From: Macrostomum lignano | Taxonomy: Eukaryota | DNA: 64,000 nt | Reading direction: 5' to 3' | Assembly (NCBI GenBank): GCA_002269645.1 | Contig: NIVC01000691.1 | Coordinates: 62,001 to 126,000 of the forward strand | Shown: positions 2,824-44,366 of the stretch, piece by piece | Layout of the letters: every line of letters begins with the position of its first letter | How positions within the stretch are numbered: position 1 is the first letter of the stretch | Notes under the pieces: model-generated | What the model was told of the DNA's origin: nothing | The model's input: the letters and a program-made list of their open reading frames with translations, nothing else | The model's database searches: none | Program-made: the position numbers and the translations under genes

Positions 2824-2901
2824 GAAACCCCTTGCGGTAGGCTACACCCCCCTACTAGGCGACACCCCTAGAATTTTTAAATCAGAATATCTGATAAAAA
2901 A

Positions 2902-9835: not shown

Positions 9836-11856
9836 GCGATTTGGTGCTGCAAGCTTGCAAACCTTTGCTGCAAGGAGTTTATTTAAACAAAATTTAGTCA
9901 ACTTTGAACTAAAAGGATAATCAGTTTGAGAAAACAATGTTGGAAAGCTTGCAATATAAATTTCTAAGACTTAGGAGGAACTCAAAAATATCATAGTAAT
10001 GTAATATAATATAGGTAAATAGTATCCTATACTACTCATGTTAGATATATATCATAAGAGCGATTAGATTATGTATATTTTTTCAATAAACATCCGCCCC
10101 ATATGCTCTTTTAGTAGTAAAATTAGCGCTTTCAGCTGTTATCTAATTCAATAGAGAGTGGCATATACAGTGACTTTAGCAGCTCGTAGTAGTACCAGTG
10201 GCCTCTACCATTAGCTAAATATTTTCGTTAACTTTACTATGTAAAACTTATAAAGAAAAAAACGATTTGAGACTCGCAATGCAATGCGAAGGCAATTTAA
10301 ATCTCAAAAGTATATTTTATAAAAATATTTTAAGCCATCTTGTTAAAAATACCGCTGTTGACTTAAAAAAAATCAATTATTGTAGCAAAATATGAACTAG
10401 GATAAAAATAATTGGACAATAAATTTGATTGGCCTAATTTGGAAACTTTTAAGAAACGTATCAACAGTGAGCATACCGGTATACAGGTACACACTTAAGG
10501 TGGAAACTTATGAAGGCGAAGACATAATTCTAATTCTAGACAAATTGGATTTTGAAAAAAAACTTTAAACAAATCAAGAATTTAATACTAAAATCATTAA
10601 GGCTGATTAACATTATCATAGAATGAGCAATCAAGTCGCACTATCGATGTAAAAAGGAATGAAAGCTGCTGTAGGAGTTACGAGCGTAACCACACGAAAT
10701 TGGACCTTTATTTGATTTGATGTCAGTGTAAACAACACTTTGCCTCTTTTGACGAACACACTTAAGAAAACTTTATTTACTAGCAGTCGAAAAATAGTGT
10801 CACGAAAATTTCCTGCAAACAACTGCGTGTAGTGACGATTGAAAGTTTTCAAAATACACTACAAATCGATTGAGCATCAATTGATTGCTTGTTTAAGCTA
10901 ATTCATTTTACTGCCATATTTCATAGAACAAGCTTAAAATCAACTAATTGTCTACGCAGTAAATTGACTCAAATGTAATTAACTGTGTACCTGCAAATGT
11001 CATGCGACACAAAAAAGAAAGGACATCAAAACAACGAGAAACAAATACAAAATGGAAATATATAATAAAAATACTAAACGATGCTTTTTACACGTGCTTT
11101 CTTTGATTTCTTTCTAGCAAGCAGTTTCTGCCTACACTGCTCACTTTGGCAAGTGGCTTTTATCTACTTGTCGAAACTTGTCTCTGACAATGCTCTTAGT
11201 GCTTGAGCAGCTAGAATGCATTGTGCGCTGAAACTTACAAGAAAATATTTTTTTAATTAAGACAAAAATTCGGCCGCAAGTGACGCCCGCCCCTCGGCCC
11301 TCGCCCATACAGCGAAGACGGGGTGAAAGGCCCCTGGCTAGAGGAAGGGGCAGATAAAACGCACGCAAAGTACTCGTACACAGAGTGCACAAAGCTGTCC
11401 CAGAGAGAGCAAAGTGACTCATAATAAAACACACATATGCTTTGCCTACGGTAGTGTAATCAAAATTCTTCCTCGAGAAATCTACACTACCGCCTATCGA
11501 TCAAAAAAGTAAGTGACAATGCGCTAGTATGCAAAATTAAAGTATACAAGGGCTATAAACAGAGAAAAAGTAAAAAACCATCAACGATTCATCACTTGCA
11601 TAAAATCAAAAAGAGTCAGAAGTTATTGAACATAAAAAATTCACAAGACTTCTCACAAAAATCAGCAAAATACATGTTGTTTTAACAAAATTATGAAACA
11701 TTTTAAAACAATAATTTGAACACATACTCGAGACGAGCATTTCAGATTTTGTAACATGGCAATTTAAAAACAAAAGTTAAAGCCGCGAAGGAATGAATAG
11801 CTCGACTAACTGTTTTGTTCATCAACTTTCTACATTTACACCATGGCTTCTTTTTC

Positions 11857-14800
11857 TTAGATACCCCACAGCGGTGGCACCATGTCCTTCAGCCGTTCGC
11901 GGTAAACTTTCATCTTCTCTCTCGCAGCAGAGAGAGAAGGGTTGGAGGCTTTGACTTGTGGCAGGGCCAAACGAAACCTTCTAAACATCTCCAGCAGCTC
12001 ATTCTCATTGGCAACATCTACCAAATCGAGTTTGTTTGCATTGATGAGCTGAATTAGATACTCACGGTAGTGCCTGTCACATATACCTGGCTTGTTATGA
12101 GTAACTTTTTCGGTACAAGGACAGACTGTCAGCTTTCCGTCCATCTTCAAATCAGGAAGCTCACAAGCTTTGCCAACATTTAAGCATGCTTCGCTCACTT
12201 TTACCTTATTTCCCCTCAGCAAATCAAGAAAGGTCGTCTGTTTTACTTGCTTCAAATTAAAGTAGCACTGGCGTTGGTGGTGCACATGAAATCCCTTAAA
12301 CGGGCAGCCTTCGTGAGGTCTCTTCTGAGGGCTTCGACAAAATGGACAGAATGAATGCCCACATCTGCAGTGAAACACAGAATATCCTGATTTGGACACT
12401 CGTTGGTAGCAAAGACTGCAGTTTGGGCAAACCAAATCAAAAGTCAGAAGCTCCATCATCTGATCGTGCAGGTTTGCGTCAGTAGGCGAGAAGCCTTGCT
12501 TCTGAGCAGCTGTGTGCATTTCGTTATAATCTTCTTTTTGTTGAATACCTGCTGCATAATCCCGATAACTGCTGCAGTTTATCCGTTGGTGATCAACCCA
12601 GAAGCCGAAGCATTTCTTGCAGACATCCTGTTTGCAAACTTTGCAGTAACTTTCGCACTGTCGAGTGTCCATTTTCGGTAGTCCACCATTCCTATGAGGA
12701 CAATAGCCATTCGAAGTGTTTACTGCAACTGTCGAGGCATCTTTAGAGGCTTTTGATTTTGTCCCTTTCTTGCCTGCGGCTTCGACCACTTCCCAACCCT
12801 CGTCGCTTTTTTTGCTTGAATTTTCTTCAAGGTGCGCCACTGCATACTCCACAGTGTCAGAGCCAAGCACATCTGCCATTTCCATCAGTTGCATCTTCAT
12901 GAAATCCCGACTATCTTCATCATCGCATACACCCTGGCAGGCAGGGCACTGAATTCTGCTGCTTTTTAGATCAACAAGAAATTTCTTAAAGCACTCTGGA
13001 CACATCTGGCACTCGCATACTGCCATGGCAACAAGTTTGTGACGTGGTAAATCATTCGAACAGCGGTTGCACTTGCGACGCAGTTGGCTCATCAGAGCAT
13101 CGTCTTCGAACGCCAAGTCGCCACACGACTCAATCGCAACTACAAGGTCTGATTCGGAAAACTCTTTAAACTTAGGCATACTTTTGACAACCAGAATTCT
13201 CTCTGCTACCCAGTTTTCTACTCTGAGCTGCAAAGCCAGGTTTTGAGCTTTATCGGACCATTCGGTAGAATCGCTTCCTGCCGCTCCGACTGCAGCACTG
13301 GCGGCTGATGTGGCTGCGGAGGTCAGCATGGACGCAGCAGCAGCGGCTTCACTGCGAGCGACTGCGCCTCCTTTAGTGGCGCCACCAATGAGTTTGGTAA
13401 TGTATGTGCAAGCAGAGCAAATTCCAAGCCCAGTTTCTGGCTGCGATGGAGCCGGGTTCACCAGCGTGCAGTGATTGCAGATCCAGCTGCCTTTGCTTTG
13501 AGAATTGTTTTCTTGGAAATTTTGAGAGGTTACATTTGAAAGAACATTCGTTGTATGATGTCCATGTAGTTGCCGATTCTGTTCTTGCTGTTTCTCTCTC
13601 TGCTGCTGCTCTCTCTGCTGCTGCTCTCTCTGCTGTTGCTCTCTCTGCTGCTGCTCTCTCTGCTGTTGCTCTCTCTGCTGCTGCTCTCTCTGCTGTTGCT
13701 CTCTCTGCTTTCGCTCTCTCTGCTGTTGCTCTCTCTGCTGTTGCTCTCTCTGCTGTTGCTCTGTCTTCTGTAGCTCTCTCAGCTGGTCTCTCAGCTGTTC
13801 TTCTCTCTCCTGTTGCTCTCTCTGCAGCTGTTTCTCTCTCTGCTGCTGCTCTCTCTGCTGTTGCTCTTTCTGCTGCTGCTCTCTCTGCTGCTGCTCTCTT
13901 TGCTGTTGCTCTCTCTGCTGCTGCTGTCTCTGCTGTTGCTCTCTCTGCTTTCGCTCTGTCTTCTGTAGCTCTCTCAGCTGGTCTCTCAGCTGTTCTTCTC
14001 TCTCCTGTTGCTCTCTCTGCAGCTGTTTCTCTCTCTGCTGCTGCTCTCTCTGCTGTTGCTCTTTCTGCTGCTGCTCTCTCTGCTGCTGCTCTCTTTGCTG
14101 TTGCTCTCTCTGCTGCTGCTCTCTCTGCTGTTGCTCTCTCTGCTTTCGCTCTGTCTTCTGTAGCTCTCTCAGCTGGTCTCTCAGCTGTTCTTCTCTCTCC
14201 TGTTGCTCTCTCTGCAGCTGTTTCTCCCTCTGCTGCTGCTCTCTCTGCTGTTGCTCTTTCTGCTGCTGCTCTCTCTGCTGTTGCTCTCTCTGCTGTTGCT
14301 CTCTCAGCTGGTCTCTCAGCTGTTCTTCTCTCTCCTGTTGCTCTTTCAGCTGGTATCTCAGTTGTTCTTCTCTCTCCTGCTGCTCTCTCAGCTGGTCTCT
14401 CAGCTGTTCTTCTCTCTCCTGTTGCTCTCTCAGCTGGTCTCTCAGCTGTTCTCTCAGCTGTTCTTCTTTCTCTTGTTGCTCTCTCAGCTGGTCTCTCAGC
14501 TGTTCTTCTCTCTCCTGTTGCTCTCTCTGGTGCTGGTCGCTCTGTTGCTGCTCCAACATCTGCAGCAGTCTCGCCGCCTCATCATTACCTAGATGAGACT
14601 CCAGTTCGTACACAAGAATCATGGTCGTGTTTCGAGCTACGTGGTCTCCAGACCAGGCCACTCCGCACACCGGACACTCCAGCTGCCCCGGCATTCCGGA
14701 CAGGAAGCTGCAGAAACAGCCACAGCACAGCTCGCACTCGCACGTCGCCATGTGAAACAGCTTGTGACGCGGCATCTGCTTTGAGCACTGGCAACACTGG

Positions 14801-15126
14801 CTTCTCAGGTGCGCCAACAGAGCTACCACATCATCACAGGCCTTCTCGCAAGACTGGATGGAGTCAATGAGGTCAGTATCGGAGAAGTCCTTGAACTCCC
14901 TGAGCTGCTTCACTTCCTGGAGTCGCTCGGTCAGCCAGGTGTCGCAGCGACGCTGGGCCTGAGGCGGCGGCGGCAGCACCTCGACTCGGTGATTCTCAAC
15001 GCTGTGCCAGTTGGTGTGGCAGGACTCGCAGATCAGTTGGAAGCCGCAGCCGGCCTCCAGGCACCGGATTGAGGCGCCTGGGCGGCTGCAGATGAGGCAG
15101 CGCTCAGCAAACATTCGGTGAGCCAT
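11857..15126 (-). CDS. RNF31-like: HOIP-like RBR protein with duplicated UBA-like/RING1 unit, QRE coiled coil and substituted active site (predicted pseudo-ligase)
   Basis: ATG at 15126. Order: B-box-like, RING1 copy 1, QRE repeat, NZF, RING1 copy 2, IBR, RING2 (CPNC..SKSGYSVFHC), LDD (ICDRHYREYLIQLINANKLD). Confidence 0.85.
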   Translation of the reverse strand: MAHRMFAERCLICSRPGASIRCLEAGCGFQLICESCHTNWHSVENHRVEVLPPPPQAQRRCDTWLTERLQEVKQLREFKDFSDTDLIDSIQSCEKACDDVVALLAHLRSQCCQCSKQMPRHKLFHMATCECELCCGCFCSFLSGMPGQLECPVCGVAWSGDHVARNTTMILVYELESHLGNDEAARLLQMLEQQQSDQHQREQQEREEQLRDQLREQQEKEEQLREQLRDQLREQQEREEQLRDQLREQQEREEQLRYQLKEQQEREEQLRDQLREQQQREQQQREQQQKEQQQREQQQREKQLQREQQEREEQLRDQLRELQKTERKQREQQQREQQQREQQQREQQQREQQQKEQQQREQQQREKQLQREQQEREEQLRDQLRELQKTERKQREQQQRQQQQREQQQREQQQREQQQKEQQQREQQQREKQLQREQQEREEQLRDQLRELQKTEQQQREQQQREQQQRERKQREQQQREQQQREQQQREQQQREQQQREQQQREQQQREKQQEQNRQLHGHHTTNVLSNVTSQNFQENNSQSKGSWICNHCTLVNPAPSQPETGLGICSACTYITKLIGGATKGGAVARSEAAAAASMLTSAATSAASAAVGAAGSDSTEWSDKAQNLALQLRVENWVAERILVVKSMPKFKEFSESDLVVAIESCGDLAFEDDALMSQLRRKCNRCSNDLPRHKLVAMAVCECQMCPECFKKFLVDLKSSRIQCPACQGVCDDEDSRDFMKMQLMEMADVLGSDTVEYAVAHLEENSSKKSDEGWEVVEAAGKKGTKSKASKDASTVAVNTSNGYCPHRNGGLPKMDTRQCESYCKVCKQDVCKKCFGFWVDHQRINCSSYRDYAAGIQQKEDYNEMHTAAQKQGFSPTDANLHDQMMELLTFDLVCPNCSLCYQRVSKSGYSVFHCRCGHSFCPFCRSPQKRPHEGCPFKGFHVHHQRQCYFNLKQVKQTTFLDLLRGNKVKVSEACLNVGKACELPDLKMDGKLTVCPCTEKVTHNKPGICDRHYREYLIQLINANKLDLVDVANENELLEMFRRFRLALPQVKASNPSLSAAREKMKVYRERLKDMVPPLWGI
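13585..14530 (-). repeat. Coding QQQRE/QLRE tandem repeat with a 195-bp higher-order unit
   Basis: 15-bp GAGAGAGCAGCAGCA-type units; the marker ttctctctcctgttgctctctctgcagctg recurs at 13801, 13996 and 14191. Confidence 0.9.
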
Positions 15127-16479
15127 GCGTTGCACAACCAAGTTTGCTTGTTGGTCAGGAGCGCTGCATGCATTGAAATAGGGTAGAAGCTTTAAACTCA
15201 ATCAAGAGCAACTGTGGATTGACAAGTTTGAGTAATCTAGCTACGAGAGCATAAACTAAAGAGAAACATTTCAGAGAGTCATTTTTGGAGGGTTTCAAAA
15301 AAATATTCAGATGGGGTGTTGCTTGCTAGGCGATATTGTGAAGAACTAAAAAGCTAAGAATCATTATTAAAGTCAATAAAATATTTCAACGCATTTAGCA
15401 CTTTGAGATGACTTGTCGAGTTTATTTGGCAACGAAAAAGAACAAAGTTTTGGTATTCCCACTGGGAAAACCAAAGTCAGCTGGTTACCCTAAAGGCTAA
15501 GGAGCACCGGTTTAAACCATCTGCTATACAAAATCATCTCATTCAGTATGATACGGTAAGTGCTGTAGTTGTCAACCAGAAAAGTGCTTTAAAAAATCTA
15601 CAAATGCCAATTAGACTACAGACTCACTAATCATTAAAGTTCTGCCTAAGCTCGCCTAGCCTCAACACCCAGCCCTAGCACAGTGGCGCAGGTCACGTCC
15701 TCCGTATTATCTGAGAGTTGCACTACTGTATTCGTGCCTGTCCATGCTTTTAACCTGTTAATGTGCATTGATTGTTTTCTACCTTTACCAAAACTATTGA
15801 TTTTTCACGACTGTTTCATTACGATTTAGTTTTTTAAAAACTGAGTTTTGATACCGCATCACACAGTGAACCATAATTTGAAGTTGAGAAAAGAACAAAA
15901 ACAAAAACGTTTCGTACCTTATAAATTAACACTTCAGCAAAACGCTTTAACAGCAAAACATTAAAATCTGGAGTATCTTAATAATGAAAAACAAAGACTA
16001 TATGGATACAGCACAGCTATCTTTGTCTTGAATCATACATTTAAATTTAAGGTAAATATCACGTTTATAAAATATAATACCATTGTATAAAATCACAGAG
16101 AATATTTTGGTATATTCTGTGTTGAAAAACGGAATAATTGAACTTTTTGTTTACAAAAACAACTCAGCATTGAATCACTCAAATTTGGTTGGAACAAATC
16201 CATCACATTTCTCAATGCAGTGTTGGAAGCCCTGTACTCGACAGGAGTTCTAGTCGAGTCCTGCGTAGACTGTAGGCCTTCCCTAGATTTCGATCTGAAA
16301 GGGTGAAGTTTTTCGCGCTAAGAAACATTGTTTTACTCTACATGACACAATTAAATAAAACTTCTATGGTGTAATCTATTGTCCGCCCTACTCGTCAAGT
16401 TGCTATACAGCAACAATCAATGAAAATGCATAATCAAACAAAAGCTGAGGATACGACCAGCCAATAATAGGAAGCAGTG

Positions 16480-17388: not shown

Positions 17389-17728
17389 CTAACCTGCATC
17401 TACGGCACCATCAGTTGCTGCTAGATCGCGAACCTCCACCCTGAACGACCGGCCCATTGTTACATTGCCAAAGCCAAATGTTAACAAATGAACTCCCGGC
17501 ATTTTCGGAGTAAAACTGCAGAGGTATTTCACTTTGCCTTCGGAGGCTGCAATTCTGAATCGAACTGGCACTTGAGCACCGTCACTTTCAACGCCTTCCG
17601 GTACGAGACGGAAAAATGGTTGGCTTCCATCAACACCGATTTTTAGGATTAGAAGTGTCGCACATAGCCGAGTTGATAAATGTGCAGTGCTGGCATTGCC
17701 ACTCAAGATTTAGTCTAACGAATTCCAT
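17389..17728 (-). pseudogene. Half-NZF start copied from the 7934-9835 gene, joined to a filamin-type Ig repeat fragment with a 1-bp frameshift
   Basis: MEFVRLNLEWQCQHCTFINSAMCDTSNPK (ATG 17728, stop 17630), then in the next frame ...YLCSFTPKMPGVHLLTFGFGNVTMGRSFRVEV (filamin-like). Confidence 0.55.
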
Positions 17729-18330
17729 ACGATTTGGTGCCGCAAGCCTGCAGGCCTTTGCTGCAAGGAGTTCATTTAAACAAAATTGAGCTAACTTTGA
17801 ATTAAAAAGGTTATCAGTGAGAAAAAATGTTGGAAAGTATTTAATTATAAATATCTAAATAGTAATTAAGTAAAATCTAGCCATATAATATCACACTCAT
17901 TAAAAGTAAATTCTATTAGCTTATAAATATTTTCCCACTGAAAATGCGCCCAATGTACGAGTATATCTTTTCTTTCAGTACTAAAATTAGCTTTTTTCTG
18001 CTGTTATCTAATTCAATAGCGAGCGGCATATGTTGTGATTTTAACAGCTTCTAACACCCGTGGCTATTACCACTAGCTAAATGTTTTCATAAATTTACTA
18101 AGTAATACTTAAAAAGAAGAAAAACGATTTGAGACTCGCAATGAAATGCGTAGACAATAGAAAGTCTAAATAGTATATTTTATAAATCTTGTAAAAAACA
18201 CAGTTGTTTAATCGAAAAATATCGATGATTGTAGAACCATGTAAACTAGGATAAAAATGATTGGACAATAATTTCGATTGGTTTAGTTTGGAGCCGATTA
18301 AGAAACGGACAAAAAGTGAGCACATAAACT
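17640..18330. repeat. Segmental duplicate of ~9750-10480 (5' end and upstream region of the type-B RBR gene)
   Basis: Shared blocks such as agtgtcgcac..gccgagttgataaatgtgcagtgctggca, ctgttatctaattcaatag and aacgatttgagactcgcaatg occur in both places in the same order. Confidence 0.8.
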
Positions 18331-18493
18331 CAGCAACCTGTTAAAAGCTTCCACTCCGAAACCAGTGGTCAAGTTTTCATAGGTCTCAGTCACTTCTCAG
18401 CCAGTTCGCCTCACCCACAAGGCCCTGGATGAGATGCGAGTATATCAGTATGCCAGGACCGCTGCTGACGCCAGAGCAAGTCTCCAGTGCCAA

Positions 18494-18846
18494 CTATCAT
18501 GAGCGCTAATTAACGTCTTCAGCTACTGTCTCCACCGCTAACTGTCTTCATCGCTTATGTCTCCACCGCTAACTGTCTTCATCGCTTATGTCTCCACCGC
18601 TAACTGTCTGCATCGCTTATGTCTCCACCGCTAATGTCAGCAGAGTAATTTACTGCTATTGACATTAAGGGATTTTAATTACATGTATTACTTTCAAACC
18701 AATTGCCGACATAAGGATTTTAACTTTTGTTAGTGTTATACGAGAAAAAGGATTGTAACAAATATAAAATACAAAACTCACTAAGATTTTGTGAAAGAAT
18801 AAGGCGCTGGAGACAGTAGCGGTGATGTCAATGGCGCTCATGACAG
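18494..18846. mobile_element. MITE-like element with ~43-bp imperfect TIRs and an internal 31-bp tandem repeat
   Basis: ctatcatgagcgc...gctactgtctccaccgc at 18494 is the inverse of gcgctggagacagtagc...gcgctcatgacag ending at 18846; TGTCTCCACCGCTAACTGTCTTCATCGCTTA x~3.5 at 18527-18633. Confidence 0.5.
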
Positions 18847-20272
18847 TAAGCGCTTGCGCTGGTGAAGCCTAGTGAGCAATAACTGAAGAATTATGGCTAG
18901 AGCTGGATTATTTAAGTTGCCACTTGTTGACCACTGGTTTAAGAAAGTTAAGGAGCCGAATGAAAAACAGCTGATAACACTTGTGTAAAGAATCGAAACT
19001 AGTACGAAAGAAAGAAGTTCGGTAAAGTCCATAGATTATAAAAACAGTGTTTTAGTATCTGTGTTTAAGTCAGAGGTCTAGTCAGACGAAAAAGAAGCAC
19101 AAAAAGTTTTTGGTAACTTTAATCACAGTCTCAAATGGCAATAAAATCTTAACAAAATAGCCGAATGTGGACACATTGGAACAAATTTAAATTAAGGCAC
19201 GATAAAATGGACCATTGGTTAGAATTGGATACTGATTATAAGAATTGAAAATAAAAAAATAAAGACCTGTTTTCTACTGCCGAAAAAGTTTCCTGGGATA
19301 TCAAATAAACATGAACAATTAAATATTAAAAAAATTAATTCACAGAACCGGGAATAATTTTGAGGATTTTTTCTTCGAGTGGTTTTCAGATTGTATCCTC
19401 GTATTAGAATTTGACTCATTTGTTCTGTTAATACGAGGTAACAGGGTGTGAAAAATCAAGTTCAAAGTATTTGAAACGATATTGGCCAATTAGTGACAAT
19501 TTTTTAGTTTTAGTTATTTTTTTAACTAACTAATAAATCAATCCATTATCAGTAGAATTACCAGGAACACATGCTTTTACCACCAAAAAACATTTATTGC
19601 TGCGCAGTAAGGAGCAACGCAGGCACCATAGAGACCCTGTTGCAAATTTCTCTAGTTTCGTTGATCAAGCCTAGACAGTGGGTAAACCTCAACTGCTGGA
19701 CATCCTCAGCTAGTTTTTCCAATCATTCCCGTCCAGAGTCACCTGATGTTACCTTTTGAAGGTCCAGAAGCTACGCCTGTGTGAAGGCCAGTGACCAACG
19801 AAGTCAAAGCTGATGCAGACACATGTGGTCGCCGTGCTGATAAAATTTGGAGGCTTGGAAAGGCTGCACTAAAAAGTAGTGCTTATTGGCGCACAGGGGA
19901 GCATTGAATACGCCCGTACAATAGCGCTAAAGGGAAAAATCCGATCTTCTACGAGTAGCAGGATCGTCGAGTATCTCGACGGTCCAGAATGCTGGTGACT
20001 TAATTGTTGTTTAAAAAGTTGCGCCGCAAAAAGTTAGCCCGTGTTTCTTGAATTTAGTGTGCCTGCGTTGCTCCGTTCCGGTGCAGCAAAAAATTATCAG
20101 GCGGGATTCCCCCGTTGATAGTTCGACGGGTGGAAAAATAGCTCGGTATTCTTACTGTTAATTAAAACTATGAGCTTAAGTTGATACAGAGTAATCCTAT
20201 CACGAAAATATCTGATCGGAAAATAGGGAGCGTCTCTAAAAATAATTATTAGGAGAGTACCGCCATGGTGAG

Positions 20273-23200
20273 TCACTTTACAAGTGGCTGCTGCTGAGCA
20301 ATCAAAGCTCGCAGGGCTGCCACTTTGTTCTCGCCGACTCCCGAGCAGTCAATTCCTTCACGCAGACACGCTCCCCTGAGCTCGCCTTCGTCCATCACAC
20401 TGACGGGATCCAGCTTTTGCTTGTTCACCAGCGATACAAGGTACTCAATGTAGTGCTTCTCGCACAGGTTCGCCTGGCCCGGTTTCACGTCGACACCGCA
20501 CGGCTCATCCTTCAAACCGCTTCCAACTTCCTTTTGCTCCATCACTTCGCATTTGTCAACTGAGTTCTCAGCTTCGCTCTCGAACTCCACCTTGTGTAAA
20601 TTCAGCAGCAGCTGGAGCCGGTCCACTCCAAAGTCTCTTAGATAGAACAGACAGTCTCTCGGGTGTTTGCAACTCAGGCCCCTGCCCTGAATGATTGTAT
20701 ACTCGCCATCACAGCCTGCGCAGAATTGAAAGCGGCACATTCGGCAGGTGAAGTGCAGACAGCCACCCTTTGCTAAGGCATATTGAAAGCGACAATTAGG
20801 GCACTCAATGCCATTGGCTTGTAGAAAAAATCCAACACCTTTCTCCTGATATTCTGGATCATTGTATTTTAGCCAAATCTCAAACAGGTCACAGTCAATG
20901 TCCTCATGCTGATCTTTCCACGGCTTTTTGCACTCTTTGCAGGTAAAGGCCTGACAATTAGGACATTGGAACTTCAAGCCGATCATGATCTCTGCAAGTA
21001 AAATTTCAAAGCCACAGCTGCTGCACCTGCACCATCGATAGTTTGGATCTTGAAAAAAATTCCACTCTGTGATCTTCTTCTCGACAAGATCCAAAACGTT
21101 TTTATCAAATTTATATTCAGATTGTTTAAAGCGGATGTCATTGATCTGTTGCAGAAGCATTTTGAAATGGCTCTCCAGCTTTTCTATTTGATTTGGATCC
21201 GGAACTTGACAGATTGGGCAACAAAGATCTGTGACATGCCCGCCACCTGTCATAGCTGTTGTCACGAAGTTACGAAAGCACTCGTGGCACAACTCGCACT
21301 GACATGAAGCCATAGGCAATAACTTGTGTCTTGGAAACTCTCCACCACAGCAACTGCACTCGCACCCCAAGAAACTTTTCACGAAGTCAACGTAATCCCG
21401 CCTGTTATTGCTGCTCTTCGCAGCCTCCGCTAGGTCATAAAGATCGCGGCCCTTAAACTCGCTGTTTTGCATAAGCTGAAAAAGTATTTTAGCATCGCTA
21501 ATCTTTCTTAAGTCGAACTCTCCCATCAGACAGTGGAGGGAGGTCTCACTTTCATTCATTCTGTCGAACTTAGGTGGCTCCTGGCCCTCCTTGCGGAACA
21601 AAAATTGTGCGAAATCTCTAAAGACCCGTTCGTTTTCGGCTTGATAAAAATTAGTAAAATCACCATCGCCCTGAAAATCAAGGTTCACCTCATGGGCTGA
21701 CTGCAGCAACTCTGGGCAGTTCTCCGCAATCCAAGCGACCTTTGCTTTGTGACGCTGGGCGCAAATCTGAATAGCCGCTTCAAGGTCGCATGTGTTGTCC
21801 AGCACAGCAGATGCGATATCGTCAAATGAGGGTCGCACACCTGCATTATCATCCTGCAGCACTTTCGCTACCTCGCAACCGACCTGCTCAATCAGTGCCG
21901 GCCATTTTTCTGCGACCCAGACCTTGAATCCAGCCTCCGACTGGGCGCCATCATCAGCAGTTGCCACCAAATACAGCTGGCCCAGCCGACCATCGAAGCC
22001 AGAAAATTCGATATCTTGTATAAGCTTCATCAGCTGTCTGTTTGCAGCCGCCTCCATCTCTGGATTTCGCTGACGGGCTACTGGCTTGACCTCAAAGGGA
22101 AGCTTGATACCGTCACTGCCACCGAGTTCACGTGGAGTTTGGCAAATTGCGCAAGACTTTGCAGTAATGGGATTAAGCATTGTACATGCGGAGCAAGACC
22201 AATCTTGATCATTAGACAGCGGCTGTCTTACGGGTTGAAAAACTTTATTCAAATCATTGTCATAAAGCTGCTCCTCTTTCTGATGTTGCTCCCTCTGATG
22301 ATGCTCTCTCTCAAGTAGCTCTCTTTCACGCTCAATTAGCTCTATCTCACGCTCCTTATCACGCTCTCTCTCCCACTCTCTCTCACGTTGCTCTCTCTGC
22401 TGCTGCTCTCTCTGATTTTGATTTCTTTGCTTTTGCTCTCTCTGCTGCTGCTCCCTCTGGTGTTGCTTTCTCCCAAGTAGCTCTCTCTTACGCTCAAGTA
22501 GCTTTCTCTCACGCTCAATTAGCTCTCTTTCACGCTCAATTAGCTCTATCTCGCGCTCCTTATCACGCTCGCTCTCCCATTCTCTCTCCCGTTGCTCTCT
22601 CTGCTGCTGCTCTATCTCCCGTTGCTCTCTCTGCTGCTGCTCTCTCTGCTGCTGCTCTATCTCCCGTTGCTCTCTCTGCTGCTGCTCTCTCTGCTGCTGC
22701 TCTCTCTGCTGCTGCTCTCTCTTCTGCTGCTGCTCTCTCTTCTGCTGCTGCTCTCTCTTCTGCTGCTCTCTCTGCTGCTGCTCTCTCTCCCGTTGCTCTC
22801 TCTGCTGCTGCTCTCTCTCCCGTTGCTCTCTCTCCCGTTGCTCTCTCTGCTGCTGCTCTATCTCCCGTTGCTCTCTCTCCCGTTGCTCTCTCTGCTGCTG
22901 CTCTCTCTGCTGCTGCTCTCTCTGCTGCTGCTCTCTCTGCTGCTGCTCTCTCTGCTGCTGCTCTCTCTGCTGCTGCTCTCTCTGCTGCTGCTCTCTCTGC
23001 TGCTGCTCTCTCTTCTGCTGCTCTCTCTGCTGCTGCTCTCTCTGCTGCTGCTCTCTCTGCTGCTGCTCTCTCTGCTGCTGCTCTCTCTTCTGCTGCTCTC
23101 TCTGCTGCTCAAAAAAATCATTTGCTTTATTTAGAACTTCAAATTGACCTCGCTGATTCAAGTGCAAAAACAAATTCTGCTGCTCTCTCAGCTTCTTCTT

Positions 23201-24250
23201 GTTGCCTTGCATGGCGCTGACCAGGGCCTCTTTGAGGTGCGACTCGCACAGACCCGCCTTGACCACTGGCCTCCCGCACTCCCCGTCCTCCAGACCGCCT
23301 CCTGACGTCTCCTTCTGCTCCTGGACGCTGCACCGACCTCCAGTGCCCGCCACTCCGACAAGCTCCAGCTGAACGCCCCGCTCCAGCGCCGTCTGCCGAA
23401 CCTTCTCCAACGGCCAGTCTCTGAACGTCTCCACGCACTCCGACCCGTGGTGGCAGTGGAGTCCCTTGTTACCGCCGCAGCACTCCTGTCGAACAAACAG
23501 ACTGCCGCAGTCGCTGCAGAACTCCGCCTTGCACTGCCTGCACGTCAGGTGAAGACAGCCGCCTCGAGACAGCTCGAACTGGAAGCCGCACTTTGGACAC
23601 GAGCTGCCCCGACTCTCCAGGAACTGCGCCAGTCCGCGCTCGCTCAAGTCCGTCTGCTGACGCCACTCGCCGAACTTCTGGCAGCTCACGCCTCGGTGCC
23701 GCTCGTGCCACGCCTTGCCGCACTTCCTGCACGTCTCCTTGCCGCAGTGCGGGCACCGCACCTGCCTGTCGTGGTGCTCCGACACCTCGAAACCGTTCGA
23801 GCACCCGCTGCACCAGCAGAAGTTGTCCGTCAGCTTCAGTCGCCAGTCGCGCAGTCTCTCATCAAGCTTCTTCATCACTGCGGGCTTCAGCTGGCCCGCC
23901 AGCAGCCTCCGAAGCAGCGGAAAGTACTCGCACGACGTGTCCGTCAGAGCTCGGTCGTCCAGCTTGTCGCACACCGGACACGTCAGCACCGACACCGAGC
24001 TGTCGTTCATCAGGCGCACCTCGATCTGCTGGCACAGACAGTCGCTGCAGACCTCGCAGCCGCACAGGGGAACCTCGACCAGCTTCTTCTCGTCGATGCA
24101 CACCGGGCACTCTGCTGATGTCTGCAGCTCTGAGAGGTCAGTGGATTTTCCGCACACTGAGCAGATCAGCCTTCTGTGCAGTTGGCGACTCAGTGCTACA
24201 TTATTGATGAAGGCACAACACGGACACTGCCACTGCGATAGGCGTGGCAT
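20273..24250 (-). CDS. RNF31-like: Chimeric double-RBR HOIP-like E3 ligase, 1325 aa (NZF, type-B RBR, QRE coil, NZF, UBA, type-A RBR-LDD)
   Basis: Single ORF with two complete RING1-IBR-RING2 units: FELSRGGCLHLTC and YALAKGGCLHFTC...HPRDCLFYLRD...LCEKHYIEYLVSLVN..LDP. Confidence 0.88.
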   Translation of the reverse strand: MPRLSQWQCPCCAFINNVALSRQLHRRLICSVCGKSTDLSELQTSAECPVCIDEKKLVEVPLCGCEVCSDCLCQQIEVRLMNDSSVSVLTCPVCDKLDDRALTDTSCEYFPLLRRLLAGQLKPAVMKKLDERLRDWRLKLTDNFCWCSGCSNGFEVSEHHDRQVRCPHCGKETCRKCGKAWHERHRGVSCQKFGEWRQQTDLSERGLAQFLESRGSSCPKCGFQFELSRGGCLHLTCRQCKAEFCSDCGSLFVRQECCGGNKGLHCHHGSECVETFRDWPLEKVRQTALERGVQLELVGVAGTGGRCSVQEQKETSGGGLEDGECGRPVVKAGLCESHLKEALVSAMQGNKKKLREQQNLFLHLNQRGQFEVLNKANDFFEQQREQQKREQQQREQQQREQQQREQQQREQQKREQQQREQQQREQQQREQQQREQQQREQQQREQQQREQQQREQREREQREIEQQQREQREREQREREQQQREQREREQQQREQQKREQQQKREQQQKREQQQREQQQREQQQREQREIEQQQREQQQREQREIEQQQREQREREWESERDKEREIELIERERELIERERKLLERKRELLGRKQHQREQQQREQKQRNQNQREQQQREQREREWERERDKEREIELIERERELLEREHHQREQHQKEEQLYDNDLNKVFQPVRQPLSNDQDWSCSACTMLNPITAKSCAICQTPRELGGSDGIKLPFEVKPVARQRNPEMEAAANRQLMKLIQDIEFSGFDGRLGQLYLVATADDGAQSEAGFKVWVAEKWPALIEQVGCEVAKVLQDDNAGVRPSFDDIASAVLDNTCDLEAAIQICAQRHKAKVAWIAENCPELLQSAHEVNLDFQGDGDFTNFYQAENERVFRDFAQFLFRKEGQEPPKFDRMNESETSLHCLMGEFDLRKISDAKILFQLMQNSEFKGRDLYDLAEAAKSSNNRRDYVDFVKSFLGCECSCCGGEFPRHKLLPMASCQCELCHECFRNFVTTAMTGGGHVTDLCCPICQVPDPNQIEKLESHFKMLLQQINDIRFKQSEYKFDKNVLDLVEKKITEWNFFQDPNYRWCRCSSCGFEILLAEIMIGLKFQCPNCQAFTCKECKKPWKDQHEDIDCDLFEIWLKYNDPEYQEKGVGFFLQANGIECPNCRFQYALAKGGCLHFTCRMCRFQFCAGCDGEYTIIQGRGLSCKHPRDCLFYLRDFGVDRLQLLLNLHKVEFESEAENSVDKCEVMEQKEVGSGLKDEPCGVDVKPGQANLCEKHYIEYLVSLVNKQKLDPVSVMDEGELRGACLREGIDCSGVGENKVAALRALIAQQQPLVK
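22290..23110 (-). repeat. Coding QQQRE/ERE repeat
   Basis: Runs of ctctctctgctgctg on the plus strand, inside ORF 20273-24250. Confidence 0.9.
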
Positions 24251-25024: not shown

Positions 25025-25390
25025 CAGGCAGGAGGTTGTGTGCACCCTGGCGCACTTTAAGCGACATTGTCACACAACCGGCAAGAGGCATTACTGCCCA
25101 TTACGCCGACTCCCCTGAGCAGGCGCACAAGCGCGCGGATACGTACGCAGTCATACGCACAGGCACACACTCACACAGGAGTGTACAGCGGCCCTGACTT
25201 TATTTATCGTTAGGCATGTACACTTCACTGTGCCCTGGGGGTTGGCCCTCAAGGTGGGCGTTAATTGCACGAGCAGAGCCAAGCTGAGATTCCAATTTAG
25301 CCCCAAATTAATGCGACTGCATTTGGAATCGAGCCTGGACCGCTGGCACATTAGAGCGCCGCGCTGGACCACTGGACTGCGGGTCCTCTC
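25025..25390 (-). mobile_element. SINE family B, copy 2
   Basis: Reverse complement of 2902-3270 (gtgcaccctggcgcactttaagcgacattgtc...ggaatcgagcctgg). Confidence 0.75.
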
Positions 25391-25898: not shown

Positions 25899-28133
25899 CT
25901 AATTCTGTTGTTGATAGTGGTAAGATTTTAGATTCTGTTGAGTCGCATTTATTGGCTGAAACGGGCTCGTGAACTGCTGCATTCTTGAGCTCATGCTCTG
26001 CATTGGCGGTACTGGTGAGTTCATGCTCTGCATTGGCTGCATTCTTGAGTTCATGCTCTGCATTGGCGGTACTGGTGAGTTCATGCTCTGCATTGGCGGT
26101 ACTGGTGAGTTCATGCTCTGCATTGGCGGTACTGGTGAGTTCATGCTCTGCATTGGCTGCATTCTTGAGTTCATGCTCTGCATTGGCGGTACTTGTAAGT
26201 TCATGCTCTGCATTGGCGGTACTGGTGAGTTCATGCTCTGCATTGGCGGTACTGGTGAGTTCATGCTCTGCATTGGCTGCATTGAGTTCATGCTCTGCAT
26301 TGGCTGCATTGAGTTCATGCTCTGCATTGGCTGCATTGAGTTCATGCTCTGCATTGGCTGCATTGAGTTCATGCTCTGCATTGGCTGCATTGAGTTCATG
26401 CTCTGCATTGGCTGCATTGAGTTCATGCTCTGCATTGGCTGCATTGAGTTCATGCTCTGCATTGGCTGCATTGAGTTCAAGCTCTGCATTGGCTGCATTG
26501 AGTTCATGCTCTGCATTGGCTGTCTGTAATGCGACGGTCTCAAGCTCTGATTCGGCAGCAGAGGCGGTGGAGGCCGAGCGAACCAGTTAGTCACAGAAGG
26601 TATGGAAGTCCTGACTGCCTGCAACGCTGTTGTGCCACCTCCAGGCCTTTGATTCGAGGTCACAGAAGCGGCAGCTGCTGGTGAGTCGCACATCTCACAG
26701 CTGGCAGGCGAACCGGATTCAACGTTGACCGGCGAGTTGACATTGTGGCACAGGCTGCAGATCCACGGCTGCTGCGGAGCGGCCTCCTGCGGCGTAGAAG
26801 TCGGCAGTAACGGCGGAGGCAGGAGCGTCATCATTTCAATGAGCATCGGAGTGAGCTTGAACTCCACTGGACTGGATGCGGCAGGGGCGGCGGCGGCGGT
26901 GACTGCCTGCTTGACTTTCCTGCCACGCATGGCGCTGGCCAGGGCCTCCTTGAGGTGCGACTCGCACAGACCCGACTCGACGACCGGCCTCCCGCACTCC
27001 CCGTCCTCCAGACCGCCTCCTGATGTCTCCTTCTGCTCCTGGATGCTGCACCGACCTCCAGCGACCGCCACTCCGACAAGCTCCAGCTGAACGCCCCGCT
27101 CCAGCGCCGTCTGCCGAACCTTCTCCAACGGCCAGTCTCTGAACGTCTCCACGCACTCCGACCCGTGGTGGCAGTGGAGTCCCTTGTTCCCGCCGCAGCA
27201 CTCCTGTCGAACAAACAGACTGCCGCAGTCGCTGCAGAACTCCGCCTTGCACTGCCTGCACGTCAGGTGAAGACAGCCGCCTCGAGACAGCTCGAACTGG
27301 AAGCCGCACTTTGGACACGAGCTGCCCCGACTCTCCAGGAACTGCGCCAGTCCGCGCTCGCTCAAGTCCGTCTGCTGACGCCACTCGCCGAACTGCTGGC
27401 AGCTCACGCCTCGGTGCCGCTCGTGCCACGCCTTGCCGCACTTCCTGCACGTCTCCTTGCCGCAGTGCGGACACCGGATCGCCAACTCCTCGACGTTGTC
27501 GTCAACTTCAAAGCCGAATGCGCAGCCGCTGCACCACATGAAGTTGCGGCTTCGCTCCAGACGCCAGTCGCGCAGTCTGTCGTCGAGCTGCTGCATCAGG
27601 TCGCGGCTGAGCCGGCCCGCTAGCAGACTCCGCAGCTGGGGAAAGTACTCACAGCTGGGATCGGCCAGGGTGTCCGAATCTGGCCGGCTGCAAACCGGAC
27701 AAGCAAGCCGGTCAGCCGAGCCGTGACTGCGCAAGCTGACTCGGACGAATCTACACAGACAGTCGCTGCAGAGCCGACAGCCGCACAGAGGGACTGTCAG
27801 AAGTGTTAGCTGCGACTCCAGGCACAGCGGACAGTCGCCACAGTCGGAGTAATCGGCAACCGCAGTCGGTGCAGCGTGGGGAACGCCAACGGGCTCGCTA
27901 GATTTGCCGCAGACTTCGCAGATGAGTCGACTGGAACCGGCGGTGCGACGCGTCTCAGCCAGCTGATTCTCGTAGGTGCAGTGACGGCAGCGCCAAGTGG
28001 CAGCGCTGCTGCTGTTCTTCTTGACAGTTGCCTTGTTTTTATGACTTTTTTGTTTTTGTTTTTCATTCTGATGCAGCTGGAATGAGGCTGAATGATTGCC
28101 TCTACGTTTGGAGCTGCTGACGCTCGATGTGGC
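25899..28133 (-). CDS. RNF31-like: HOIP-like type-B RBR E3 ligase with C-terminal NZF and PMQSMNS repeat tail; start probably in an unidentified upstream exon
   Basis: WRCRHCTYEN..LICEVCGK (NZF), RING1, IBR, FELSRGGCLHLTC, WICSLCHNVN (NZF). No in-frame ATG upstream of the domains; candidate acceptor TTATTCCAG|GCC at 28133. Confidence 0.8.
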   Translation of the reverse strand, partial: ATSSVSSSKRRGNHSASFQLHQNEKQKQKSHKNKATVKKNSSSAATWRCRHCTYENQLAETRRTAGSSRLICEVCGKSSEPVGVPHAAPTAVADYSDCGDCPLCLESQLTLLTVPLCGCRLCSDCLCRFVRVSLRSHGSADRLACPVCSRPDSDTLADPSCEYFPQLRSLLAGRLSRDLMQQLDDRLRDWRLERSRNFMWCSGCAFGFEVDDNVEELAIRCPHCGKETCRKCGKAWHERHRGVSCQQFGEWRQQTDLSERGLAQFLESRGSSCPKCGFQFELSRGGCLHLTCRQCKAEFCSDCGSLFVRQECCGGNKGLHCHHGSECVETFRDWPLEKVRQTALERGVQLELVGVAVAGGRCSIQEQKETSGGGLEDGECGRPVVESGLCESHLKEALASAMRGRKVKQAVTAAAAPAASSPVEFKLTPMLIEMMTLLPPPLLPTSTPQEAAPQQPWICSLCHNVNSPVNVESGSPASCEMCDSPAAAASVTSNQRPGGGTTALQAVRTSIPSVTNWFARPPPPLLPNQSLRPSHYRQPMQSMNSMQPMQSLNSMQPMQSMNSMQPMQSMNSMQPMQSMNSMQPMQSMNSMQPMQSMNSMQPMQSMNSMQPMQSMNSMQPMQSMNSPVPPMQSMNSPVPPMQSMNLQVPPMQSMNSRMQPMQSMNSPVPPMQSMNSPVPPMQSMNSPVPPMQSMNSRMQPMQSMNSPVPPMQSMSSRMQQFTSPFQPINATQQNLKSYHYQQQN
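25975..26520 (-). repeat. Coding minisatellite: 27-bp (PMQSMNSMQ) and 33-bp (PMQSMNSPVPP) units
   Basis: gagttcatgctctgcattggc repeated about 19 times with two alternative spacers. Confidence 0.9.
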
Positions 28134-30600: not shown

Positions 30601-33600
30601 TTAATTTTGTGCCCCAAGCGGAACATTTGCTACAATCATATCTCGAAGAGCATCTAGACTATTTGCGGGTACTCCCGAGCAATCGATTCCATGACGGTTG
30701 CACACTGCTCGCAATTCGTTTTCCTCCATCACGCTAACGGGATCCAGCCTTTTTCTGTTAATCAGCGCTACAAGGTATTCAATGTAGTGCTTTTCGCACA
30801 GGTTTGCCTGACCAGGATTAACTTTGGCTCCACAGGCTTCGTCGGACAAGGTGTCTTTCTGCATCATTAATTGACACTCTTCGACAGCTGGTTCAATATC
30901 CTTCTTAAACTCTACTTCGTGAGACAGCAGTAGCTGCTGCAATCGATTCACACCATAGTCTCTTATGTAGTACAGACAGTCTCTCGGATGTTTACATGCT
31001 AAGCCCTTACCTGACTTATCAGTAAAGAATTCTCCTTTGCAGCCAGCACAGAATTGAAATTTACACTTTCTGCACGTAAAGTGTTCACATCCACCCTTTG
31101 AAAGCTCGTACTGATACCGACAATTCGGACACTGAATACCGTTTTCCCTTAGAAAAGATGCTACTTCTTCTTCCTGATACTTTGGATCATTGTCTTGAAG
31201 CCATTGCTCGAATTGATCACAGCTAAGCTCTTCGTGCTGATCCCTCCAGGGCTTGTTGCAGTCTTTGCAAGAATGTTTGTGGCACTCGGGGCACTGATAT
31301 TTTTTGCCAAGAATTATATCTGGAAGCATCAGTCCGGTGCGGCACTGGCTGCACCAGCGAAAGTTATCATCGAGATAAAGATTCCACTCAGCGATTTTAT
31401 TCTCAATGAGATCCACATCCTGTTTCTCAAATCGCACCGTATCGTGGTGAAAGTTTCGAATCTGATCCAAAAGAGTGGCGAAATGACTTTGCAGCTCTTC
31501 GGTTTGATTGGCATTCGGCTTGGTACAGTATGGGCAGTGAAGCTCTGTGACATGCCTGTTGTTTCGAATCACGGAACAAACAAACATGTGAAAACACTCA
31601 TGGCAAAACTCACATTGGCAAGAAGCCATTAACAGCAGTTTATGCTTTGGATATGGTTCAAAACAGGACTTGCATTCATAACTGAAGTACTTTTGCACTG
31701 ATTCAACATCAAAGCAGTTCTTAGCAGCTTCAGCAAGGTCTTTAATGTCGTAGCATTTCAGCATGTCGATGCAAAGAAAGTTTCTAAATCTCTCTGCATC
31801 TTCGATTTTTCTTATGTCAAACTCTCCCATCAGACAGTAAAAGGAAGCTTTGCTAGTGTTCATCTGCCGAAATTTAGGCTCCTCAGTTCCTTCCTTAGAA
31901 AATAAAAACTTGGCAAAGTCATTGAATGCGCGCTGATTTTCCATTTCAAATAAGTTAGTCTGATCGCCTTGCATATCAAGGTTTACCTCATGGGGTGACT
32001 GCAGCAATTCCGGGCAATTTTCGGCAATCCAAGCGACCTTTGCTACGTGACGCTGGGCGCACAGCTGGATAGCCGCTTCAAGATCGCATGTGTTGTCTAA
32101 AACAGCAGATGCGATTTCGTCAAATGAGGGTCGCAATATCACATCAGCCACACCTGCATGAGTATCCTGCAATACTTTTGCAACTTCGCAACCGACCTGC
32201 TCAATCAGTGCCGGCCATTTTTCTGCTACCCAGGCCTTGAATCCAGCCTCCGACTGGGCGCCATCATCAGCAGTTGCCACCAAATACAGCTGGCCCAGCC
32301 GACCATCGAAGCCAGAAAATTCGATATCTTGTATAAGCTTCATCAGCTGTCTGTTTGCAGCCGCCTCCATCTCTGGATTTCGCTGACGGGCTACTGGCTT
32401 GACCTCAAAGGGAAGCTTGATACCGTCACTGCCACCGAGTTCGCGTGGAGTTTGGCAAATTGCGCAAGACTTTGCAGTAATGGGATTAAGCATTGTACAT
32501 GCGGAGCAAGACCAATCTTGTTCATTGGACAGCGGTTCTTGTTTAGGCTTCAGTGGTGCGCGATCTGGAATCTCCACCTGCTTTGGAGCTTCTGGCTGTT
32601 TTACTGCTGGCTCCTGCTGCTGTTTTTTGACCTTTGCAATAATTTCCTTATCGTCGCAAGTCATCGAACAAACTGAGCATATGACGCGGCTACTTTTTAT
32701 TAGCTTCGTCTCGGCTATAGGATTTAGCGCCGTACAAACGGGGCAAGGCCAACTGTTCGCTTCCGTTGGTTCGGTAGGCACCGGCCTTGGAGGCAACTGC
32801 TGCTGCGGAGGGGGTGGAGCTGTCTCAGGTTTCGGCACAATTGATTTAGACAGACGTGGCTTGGGCTTCGGTATCGATTGTGGCTGTTGAGGCGGTTGCG
32901 GTGGCTGCGGAGCTGGCAGCGATGGCTGCGGAGGTAGCTGATCTGAGCAGTCAAAAAACTCTTCTTCAGGCGTCGGCGGTCGACGAATGTCGCCAGCTGG
33001 CTTCGAAAAGCTGCGCTCCTCGCTAATAGGCTTTAACGACATCATGAACTCATTGAGTTTCATTACACGGGCATCTGACTCGCTGGTATCGCTAGGCTGC
33101 TGTCGCGGTGGCTGCTGTGGCTGTTGTTGAGGTAAAACATATCGCGGTTTTTGTCCAGGATACTGCGGCGGTGGAACCCTCGGAGGCGGCACAGCAACAG
33201 CAGGTGCAGCAGCAGCAGCAGCAGCAACAGGCGCAGGTTGCTGCTGCTGTTGAGCTAGATTTGGACTATTATTACCCATGAGACCAAGTTGAGACTTATA
33301 ACTAACCGCTTGACTGTTTGACACAACCTTTCTAACTCCAGAGTTCAACTGCACACTGGCAGGTCCCACCACGCCCGGTGGCAGCAACCGCACAGCGTTG
33401 GATCCGACGGCGTCGCTGATTTTTCGTCGATTATGACTGCGCCGGTCCGGATGCCCGTGCCAGCGTCCGTCGCAACTCTCGCACAGGCGCCGCTTGGAGC
33501 AGTGCTTCTCCTGGCAGGCCACCGTTGCCGCGGCCTCGCCGCACAGGTCGCAATTCTGGTTGAGTTTGCGCTGCATTGCGTTTACTCTATCCTGCATTCC

Positions 33601-39250: not shown

Positions 39251-39809
39251 TTTCTCTAGTCTACTCACGCTTGCCTCTGCCTGATATTTGAATCACGGAA
39301 AGCTTTCACGCAAATCGTGTACAATAGTCGAATTCTATAGCTGAGCTTGAAAACAAAACTATTGACCTCCGCGAACCATACAATCGCACAAGTAGTAACA
39401 AAGACGCAAAAAGTTTTGCGTTAATATGTCCTCTCATTTTTTCTTGTTTTTCTAAGCTCGGTCAACACTGGAAAATCTCGTTGGCCTACGCCTGACAGAC
39501 AGCTGTCGCTAACTCAGCCTGATAGGTATCGGCATGTCGGAGAGCTGCAGGAACTACACAGAGTGGGATAAAGACTGGTTGACCAGTGAAAGCTTGAAAA
39601 AACTGTGAAATCTTTTAGCCTCATCTATATTAGCAATACAATAGGCTGCCTTAGACTCTTTGTCCACCCAACCCCCAAACGTCTTTCAAGAAGGGGATGC
39701 ATTGGAGAGCAGTGTGGGAAAAATGCGATAAAAAAGTTGGTGTCAAGTGGCTTACAGTTTCACAAGTCTAGCTTTATTCCAAGTGACCTTCTACTCGTAT
39801 CTGTTCTCA

Positions 39810-41006: not shown

Positions 41007-43071
<2,065 letters not shown>

Positions 43072-43934: not shown

Positions 43935-43942
43935 GTGAGTCA

Positions 43943-44270: not shown

Positions 44271-44366
44271 GAAGTGTAGTTGGGTGTGCGGAGAGGCGAG
44301 AGGGAGCAGAGGCACATTCATGCATGTTACACAGACAAAGATGCAAGCCGCCAACTCACCCTCCAG

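Follow-up and report, generated by a model that had tools for sequence, protein, structure and literature searches.

An open reading frame encoding two HOIP-like RBR modules in a recombining tandem gene array of Macrostomum lignano

In the literature on RBR ubiquitin ligases (E3s) that we searched, 'two RBR' always refers to two separate proteins, and no tandem, double or duplicated RBR/TRIAD module is described; duplicated supradomains go unmentioned in Marín's survey of the RBR genes of plants, and a literature search on HOIP in flatworms found nothing. Two catalytic RBR units do meet in one particle in LUBAC, the complex that assembles linear ubiquitin chains, which contains HOIL-1L and the catalytic subunit HOIP (RNF31), and in which priming and extending must be dissected within a multi-subunit complex. 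A precedent for two E3 catalytic units in one polypeptide is CUL9 (PMC11257990), which joins a cullin-RING to an RBR, two different E3 classes, and is conserved in vertebrates and biochemically characterized. Here we analyse a 64,000-nucleotide (nt) stretch of the Macrostomum lignano genome (the window), identical in sequence to part of contig NIVC01000691.1 of assembly GCA_002269645.1 (Mlig_3_7; record position = window position + 62000). On its minus strand, the window carries a 1325-aa open reading frame (ORF) with two HOIP-like RBR modules at 20273–24250 (NIVC01000691.1:82273-86250). This ORF is probably a recent chimeric member of a tandem, heavily recombining HOIP/RNF31-like family, generated by recombination-driven domain shuffling, with its two-RBR capacity as a by-product.

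The ORF begins with ATG, has no internal stop and stays open across 3975 nt, including two junctions and a repeat of approximately 825 nt. The initial annotation had described it as one polypeptide with two catalytically intact HOIP-like RBR modules, a description that withstood profile and structure-based comparison. Pfam analysis of the product revealed four stretches matching IBR/IBR_1 and two stretches matching the HOIP LDD family PF18091, and a single-module hidden Markov model (HMM) built from an alignment of five RBR modules of the window's paralogs gave two full-length matches, at aa 44-353 (462 bits) and aa 960-1300 (564 bits). When compared with the human HOIP RBR-LDD structure 5EDV, each module aligned end to end, the N-terminal module (N-module) to chain positions 7-319 (E = 2.4e-53) and the C-terminal module (C-module) to chain positions 6-338 (E = 6.3e-78). 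RNF31 chains were the only solved relatives of either module at E < 1e-5, HOIP (5EDV, 4LJO) being the one solved relative of both. In the alignments to 5EDV and to the paralogs, all zinc-ligand Cys/His columns are invariant in both modules, and the GGC-x-H motif and the Arg-Asp pair matching R935/D936 of the HOIP acceptor site are likewise intact in both. The two expected active-site motifs are present, the type-B GGCLHL with Cys232 at 23555-23557 and the type-A GGCLHF with Cys1164 at 20759-20761. Aligned to the HOIP triad C885/H887/Q896, the N-module reads Cys232/His234/Glu and the C-module Cys1164/His1166/Gln; glutamate is also the third triad residue of parkin and HHARI. Judged by these residues, both modules appear catalytically competent, and dual catalysis is plausible.

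The N-module is preceded by an NZF-like zinc finger (24152..24232, aa 7-33) that was read from the sequence as W-x-C-x2-C...C-x2-C, received no Pfam call and carries the target-specific sequence CPCCAFINNVALS. It consists of RING1 (23969..24109, aa 48-94; type B, by alignment to 5EDV and paralogs), IBR (23681..23818, aa 145-190; Pfam and 5EDV alignment), RING2 (23507..23599, aa 218-248) and an LDD (23192..23506, aa 249-353) that keeps the acceptor-site Arg-Asp and is incomplete: the 5EDV alignment stops at chain position 319 (HOIP ~1011), so that the last approximately 60 residues are absent. The same truncation occurs in every type-B paralog, with the PF18091 profile matched partially. The C-module comprises RING1 (21209..21358, aa 965-1014; type A, or 'L-type', from the same alignments), IBR (20891..21031, aa 1074-1120; Pfam and 5EDV alignment), RING2 (20711..20803, aa 1150-1180) and a complete LDD (20276..20704, aa 1183-1325), in which positions 1-92 of 92 of PF18091 are matched at aa 1210-1297; its RING1–IBR region includes a target-specific patch with PICQVPDPNQIEKLESHFKMLLQQINDIR. 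All coordinates are on the minus strand.

The connection between the modules, which the initial annotation had read as a QRE coil followed by NZF and UBA, was also found. It opens with a lead-in, LREQQNLFLHLNQRGQFEVLNKANDFFEQQ (23102..23191), derived from a QRE-bearing paralog, and continues into a Q/E/R-rich repeat (22286..23110, aa 381-655) whose core at 22581-23109 consists of about 35 copies of a 15-bp unit, with degenerate sequence to either side. Its 275 residues are 86% Q/E/R, and we infer that they form a charged helix. A linker tail ending in EEQLYDNDLNKVFQPVR (22225..22285) then leads to a RanBP-type NZF equivalent to HOIP NZF2 (22139..22201, aa 684-704), for which the Pfam zinc-ribbon match at aa 683-708 scores 23.1 bits, slightly below the 27-bit cut-off, and to a HOIP-type UBA pair (UBA_HOIP, PF16678; 21719..22039, aa ~738-844; 26.9 bits against a cut-off of 22.4) that may bind the UBL domains of partners. 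Junction 1 lies at 23191/23192 and junction 2, where the QRE tail meets NZF2, at 22224/22225; the peptides that span them read …GNKKKLREQQNLFLHLNQR… and …VFQPVRQPLSNDQDWSCSACTMLNPITAK….

The C-terminal part therefore resembles HOIP in having NZF, a UBA pair, RBR, a complete LDD, the Cys-His-Gln triad and the acceptor-site Arg-Asp. Unlike HOIP, the ORF encodes two RBR modules and a Q/E/R repeat of approximately 275 residues, the third triad residue of its N-module is Glu, the LDD of that module breaks off at the equivalent of HOIP ~1011, and neither the PUB domain nor the N-terminal B-box-like zinc finger was found by Pfam in the 1325-aa product. The suggested likeness to HOIP with HOIL-1L was upheld for the presence of two RBR units, as in LUBAC, but not for their identity: no HOIL-1-like RBR, UBL or ester-forming signature was detected, and the N-module is HOIP-like with a truncated LDD, so the second RBR is not of the HOIL-1/RBCK1 type and the analogy with LUBAC is loose. 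The link between the units would moreover be covalent, unlike that in LUBAC, with both units of HOIP type, and any cooperation between them would be conjectural.

As had been supposed, no characterized counterpart of the architecture was found, either in the literature searched or among the best-ranked HOIP-like proteins. A HMMER search with the single-module profile over 1.84 billion representative proteins returned 184 proteins at E <= 1e-30; among the best 150 of these, which were re-scanned and which represent HOIP-like proteins, so that any double module of another RBR subfamily would fall outside the ranking, none had two complete modules or two catalytic RING2 motifs, except the hybrid model P0003. 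The apparent 'double RING2' of P0003 (L004:10001-17646) was rejected as a precedent, being a gene-model artefact that joins two paralogs of one locus, L004b and L004c. A further candidate, P0007 (883 aa, five matched stretches), was also rejected as a double RBR protein: its RING1-IBR unit is repeated in tandem four to five times and followed by only one catalytic RING2, which reflects either internal duplication or a gene-model artefact. The closest database proteins to the ORF product are entries of the type 'hypothetical protein BOX15_Mlig…' from M. lignano, and an exact-protein look-up showed that the 1325-aa protein itself is not on record.

The genomic setting of the ORF was examined by comparison with the array's other copies. 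The species is a polyploid of recent origin, and three subgenomes are present in Mlig_3_7 (PMC10733133); the other array copies lie on NIVC01000762.1 (loci L001 and L004) and NIVC01000110.1 (loci L002 and L005). In the window, HOIP-like single-ORF genes form a head-to-tail array on the minus strand. Read in transcriptional order, its members are a full-length HOIP-like gene of 1180 aa (34143-30601), the 'type-B-long' gene (28148-25899), the target ORF, a QRE-bearing gene with two RING1 and a RING2 without the catalytic Cys (15201-11857), a type-B gene termed '7934-type', a short type-A gene (5719-4118) and a second QRE-bearing gene cut by the window edge (1 to ~870). In both other arrays, the gene that follows type-B-long is a stand-alone 388-aa NZF plus type-B RBR gene ending in '…GDNKKPRVGVANV…KRCR*' (unfused type-B-short; L001:14355-15521; L002:19436-20602 = L005:10001-11167). 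It is the syntenic counterpart of the target and shares its start, its 5′ flank (collinear, 91%) and an RBR core 98-99.7% identical, but lacks the QRE repeat and the second module. The double-RBR fusion is thus not found at the syntenic position in L001 or L002/L005, and the third-subgenome array (L002/L005) has no fusion within the region examined. In these two arrays, the GGCLHF module resides inside a HOIP gene of 1186-1188 aa.

Alignment to L001 delimited the rearranged segment. The window is collinear with L001 up to 23191 (= L001 15414) and again from 17637 (= L001 15692), and between these points a 5.5-kb block (17638..23190, minus strand) stands where the two other subgenome copies, both collinear with the window on each side of it, have 277 bp. 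It comprises the lead-in with the QRE repeat, a HOIP 3′ half from NZF2 to the stop codon that is 91-93% identical to the L001/L002 HOIP genes, patchy matches to approximately 1.1 kb of HOIP 3′ flank, and approximately 700 bp (18322-17641) resembling the 7934-type upstream region and first 30 codons. Immediately downstream of type-B-short lies an open segment with a filamin-type Ig-like match (17392-17709, minus strand; L001:15530-15937; L002:20611-21018) that is sub-threshold in Pfam (17.5 versus 26.9 bits). In the window, the first approximately 53 codons of this segment are displaced by the block, indicating that the unfused state is ancestral. The PUB-like N-terminus and zinc finger, read from the sequences, occur only in the HOIP gene of the window (30601-34143) and its homeologs, and the N-terminal two-thirds of this gene match those homeologs. 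Past the approximate end of the UBA region, it carries a very divergent 'E-type' RBR-LDD with GGCEHF (dS, the synonymous divergence, ~1-2) and an unrelated 3′ flank. The source of the GGCEHF block was not found among the loci examined. The target, for its part, carries the 'L-type' half, which in the other subgenomes belongs to HOIP.

The initial annotation had also placed a junction at 23194, and this junction proved real: homology of the unfused type-B genes to the ORF stops at 23191/23192, in unique sequence approximately 80 bp upstream of the repeat and outside it. Searching the fetched loci by tblastn with junction peptides, followed by inspection of ORF lists and alignments, revealed the identical base-level breakpoint at three loci: the target, L004:4565-7882 and L004:10031-12025. 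The fusion loci share the context …AAGAAGA[A/C]GC/TGAGAGAGCAGC… (slash, breakpoint), where unfused genes read on …CCGTGTAGG…, and their junction peptides are 57-78% identical. That three loci are broken at the same base suggests that the junction arose once and was then propagated. The first sister locus, L004:4565-7882 (NIVC01000762.1:233616-236933, on that record's minus strand), likewise encodes two RBR modules in one unbroken ORF, here of 1105 aa, with HMM matches at aa 189-497 and 741-1080 and the same double pattern in Pfam. It runs from a 7934-type N-terminus and type-B RBR (GGCLHL) through a 'KKKK/LREQQ…' lead-in and QRE to NZF, L-type RBR and full LDD. It thus shares the type-B::lead-in::QRE breakpoint and two full RBR modules with the target, but differs in its 7934-type N-terminus, short QRE and lack of the UBA pair, and in its second active site, which reads GGSLHF owing to a TGT->TCT change (Cys->Ser) and has Lys for the triad Gln, a dead site by sequence. 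The second sister, L004:10031-13750, has the same breakpoint (10031-12025) and a long QRE, but then a single in-frame stop ('QNRQLH*HHATNV') before an NZF and a pseudo-RBR without the catalytic Cys. The type-B::QRE fusion genes thus make up a small family in M. lignano, and two of its members are double-RBR ORFs; among the three fusion loci, only the window copy has two catalytic centres with all key residues in place.

These observations can be accommodated by the following scheme, in which the order of recombination events, like any enzymatic behaviour, is conjectural. A single event at one breakpoint would have joined a type-B RBR gene to the linker and repeat of a paralog that bears QRE, and non-allelic homologous recombination or gene conversion would then have duplicated and reshaped this fusion into the three loci. 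The window copy would consist of three pieces: the promoter-proximal part of type-B-short, the fusion junction with QRE, and the canonical HOIP 3′ half of this subgenome (NZF, UBA pair, RBR and full LDD). The N-module, with its Cys-His-Glu triad and truncated LDD, would be the constant catalytic part of all fusions, and the C-module would bring the full HOIP equipment for building Met1-linked chains. Its two-RBR coding capacity would be most simply understood as a by-product of shuffling rather than an architecture selected for dual catalysis; if translated, the product would hold two independently loadable RBR units separated by approximately 275 residues of charged helix. A single donor supplying both the QRE repeat and the GGCLHF RBR for the whole 3′ part was considered and rejected: the QRE-bearing paralogs (the 11857-type, and the left-edge type as represented in L004) terminate in a pseudo-RBR that lacks the catalytic Cys.

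The mosaic origin is also reflected in base composition and diagnostic sites. At third codon positions, GC content drops from 0.82 in the N-module to 0.52-0.54 in the C part, and both values agree with those of the respective source genes. The type-B core is 96-99.7% identical among paralogs, and its diagnostic sites in the target are of type-B-short type at the 5′ end and of fusion/7934 type at the 3′ end, a switch that points to homologous recombination or gene conversion there. Target-specific changes in the N-module number 15 non-synonymous and 4 synonymous. Of the replacements, six lie in the N-terminal NZF, among them TF->AF, with loss of the TF motif's ubiquitin-binding Thr, and two in the RBR core. 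Seven lie within the last 50 residues; three of these, K324E, D350N and N351K, match 7934/fusion-type sequence and were therefore probably introduced by the donor. An explanation by relaxed selection acting on the N-module was tried and dropped, the 15:4 ratio not differing significantly from 9:10 in the unfused copies (Fisher p = 0.09). The target C-module is an outgroup to the three other L-type copies (dS 0.22-0.26, versus 0.13-0.17 among them). Its private branch carries 28 non-synonymous and 25 synonymous changes (omega, the ratio of non-synonymous to synonymous rates, ~0.28), none at a zinc or catalytic residue and clustered between RING1 and IBR. Judged by this substitution pattern, the sequence has evolved under constraint. 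Its identity to the HOIP genes varies from region to region (NZF-UBA 97-99%, RING1-IBR 81-89%, RING2-LDD 95-99%), which looks like a history of gene conversion, and with gene conversion the constraint is not assignable to the fused gene itself.

Several points weigh against reading the locus as a by-product of shuffling. The long intact ORF and the omega of ~0.3 in the C-module could mean selection on the fusion, and gene conversion among paralogs makes dN/dS values and ages unreliable. The target fusion is known here from assembled genomic sequence, the deposited annotation has no gene over it within the range down to window position 20601, and junction 2 occurs in the window only, among the sequence examined. 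The assembly is, in addition, error-prone, with 36% of the Mlig_3_7 length in chimeric scaffolds (PMC10733133).

The last two points bear on the possibility that reads of different paralogs were mis-joined and that no single DNA molecule carries both modules in frame. Near-identity of the paralogs over the type-B core, the low-complexity repeat of approximately 0.8 kb between the modules, the chimera-prone assembly and the visible confusion of the gene models P0003 and P0005 by paralogy would all favour such a mis-join, as would the lack of a second copy of the target-type junction 2. On the other hand, the inserted block has collinear flanks on both sides, so that an artefact would need two compensating mis-joins, and on both flanks of the block the window remains a distinct third copy, at similar distances from L001 and L002 and with no switch of subgenome. 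Misassembly across the repeat is made less likely by junction 1, which is placed in unique sequence and is found again, with the same breakpoint but in diverged form, at two loci on another contig; the repeat is also far shorter than typical long reads. The C-module, being unlike every other copy, must reside somewhere in the genome, and the HOIP gene of this subgenome has the E-type block where the L-type half would sit; if this subgenome's two HOIP-type 3′ halves were interchanged, a double-RBR ORF would nonetheless result. Taken with the evidence on both sides, we regard an assembly artefact as distinctly unlikely.

The opposite reading is that the fusion is a selected, functional E3 with two active RBR modules that cooperate in cis, for example with one module priming or branching and the HOIP-type module extending Met1-linked chains, so that the protein would be equivalent to a two-RBR complex with its units covalently joined. 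The intact zinc and catalytic residues of both modules would be expected of such an enzyme, and so would the frame kept open across both junctions and the repeat, the purifying selection on the fairly long private branch of the C-module, and the restriction of the N-module RBR core to two amino-acid changes relative to the unfused copies. The fusion architecture has, furthermore, lasted into three diverged loci, and the 5′ flank is collinear with that of type-B-short, for which a transcript-based model starts with residues 1-80 of the L002 copy. Set against this are the lack of a syntenic fusion in two of the three subgenomes, one array being without any fusion, and the fate of the sister fusions, which lost the second active site or stop before it. 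No gene is annotated at the locus over the range given above, 13 of the 15 target-specific N-module replacements fall in the N-terminal NZF and at the C-terminal edge of the module, and the signs of selection may be inherited from unfused donors through gene conversion. On its coding strand, the gene region contains just two AATAAA hexamers (at 23131 and 22249); each precedes a T-run, and they lie in the unique linkers that flank the QRE repeat. Zero to two AATAAA per coding sequence is normal in these genes, and the hexamers are therefore a caveat rather than evidence. On balance, we consider a selected dual-catalytic E3 possible but doubtful. The fully specified case, a single expressed polypeptide in which both HOIP-type RBR modules would be active and truly cooperate in cis across a long charged helix, seems to us unlikely. 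We thus favour recombination-driven shuffling as the origin of the ORF.

For expression, the deposited annotation is an unreliable guide in this family. None of the fusions is annotated, there being no gene over L004:4565-7882 either. A search with the junction peptide returned P0005 only and missed P0001-P0004, although these share 45-60 identical residues with the query, so its null result carries no weight. P0005 (494 aa; L005:10001-21167) combines the first 80 residues of the L002 type-B-short with a 7934-type tail approximately 9 kb away, and P0003 is a comparable hybrid; in both, exons of different near-identical paralogs 6-11 kb apart are joined. As a transcript-based model, P0005 suggests that the type-B-short start is transcribed in one subgenome. 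Splicing of type-B-short to the filamin-like exon, by which the target transcript might skip the second module, was considered and found no support, P0005 being a hybrid and the filamin match sub-threshold; it is further undercut by the displacement of the start of that segment by the 5.5-kb block. The practical warning is that deposited gene models in this HOIP-like family are paralog hybrids and miss the fusion ORFs.

Should the protein be produced, it would stand as the first E3 found in nature to possess two RBR catalytic centres, and would offer a ready system in which to ask whether RBR units in cis split chain priming and extension. Even unexpressed, the locus records how new multi-domain enzymes originate through near-identical tandem paralogs in a recent polyploid: one breakpoint was used three times with three outcomes, namely two sites predicted to be live, a dead second site and a stop.

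The neighbouring genes of the array have features of their own. In the QRE-bearing paralogs, the RING2 without the catalytic Cys reads SKSGYSVFHC or SKSGVPVFHC (11857-15201; 1 to ~870), and the 11857-15201 gene also has a duplicated unit of UBA-like region and RING1. Intact QRE pseudo-RBR ORFs occur in at least two subgenomes (11857-15201, L005:13643-17209), and the L001 copy looks rearranged; by sequence, these paralogs look like conserved pseudo-ligases. The 3′ end of type-B-long (25899-26500, minus strand) encodes a long MQSMNS/PVPPMQSMNS peptide repeat, the number of which varies among the subgenome copies.

Outside the array, very long microsatellite and minisatellite arrays occupy 39605-43510 (+) and 46826-49620, and the same arrays flank the HOIP array in L002. 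One of them is a tetranucleotide array that reads (SIYL)n over approximately 2 kb, and others read as PSYLSSNTPHIY and THFGAAD repeats. An ORF at 43673-45508 (+) has C-terminal C2H2 zinc fingers (PF00096, E = 5.5e-13) after a low-complexity repeat, and an ORF at 53548-54165 (+) encodes ankyrin repeats (PF00023, E = 5e-23) and is probably one exon of a larger gene. Finally, a dispersed repeat of approximately 350 bp, probably a transposable-element fragment, occurs three times in the window in both orientations at 87-89% identity (25026-25389, 56648-56976 and 2901-3269), and also in L001 and L002.

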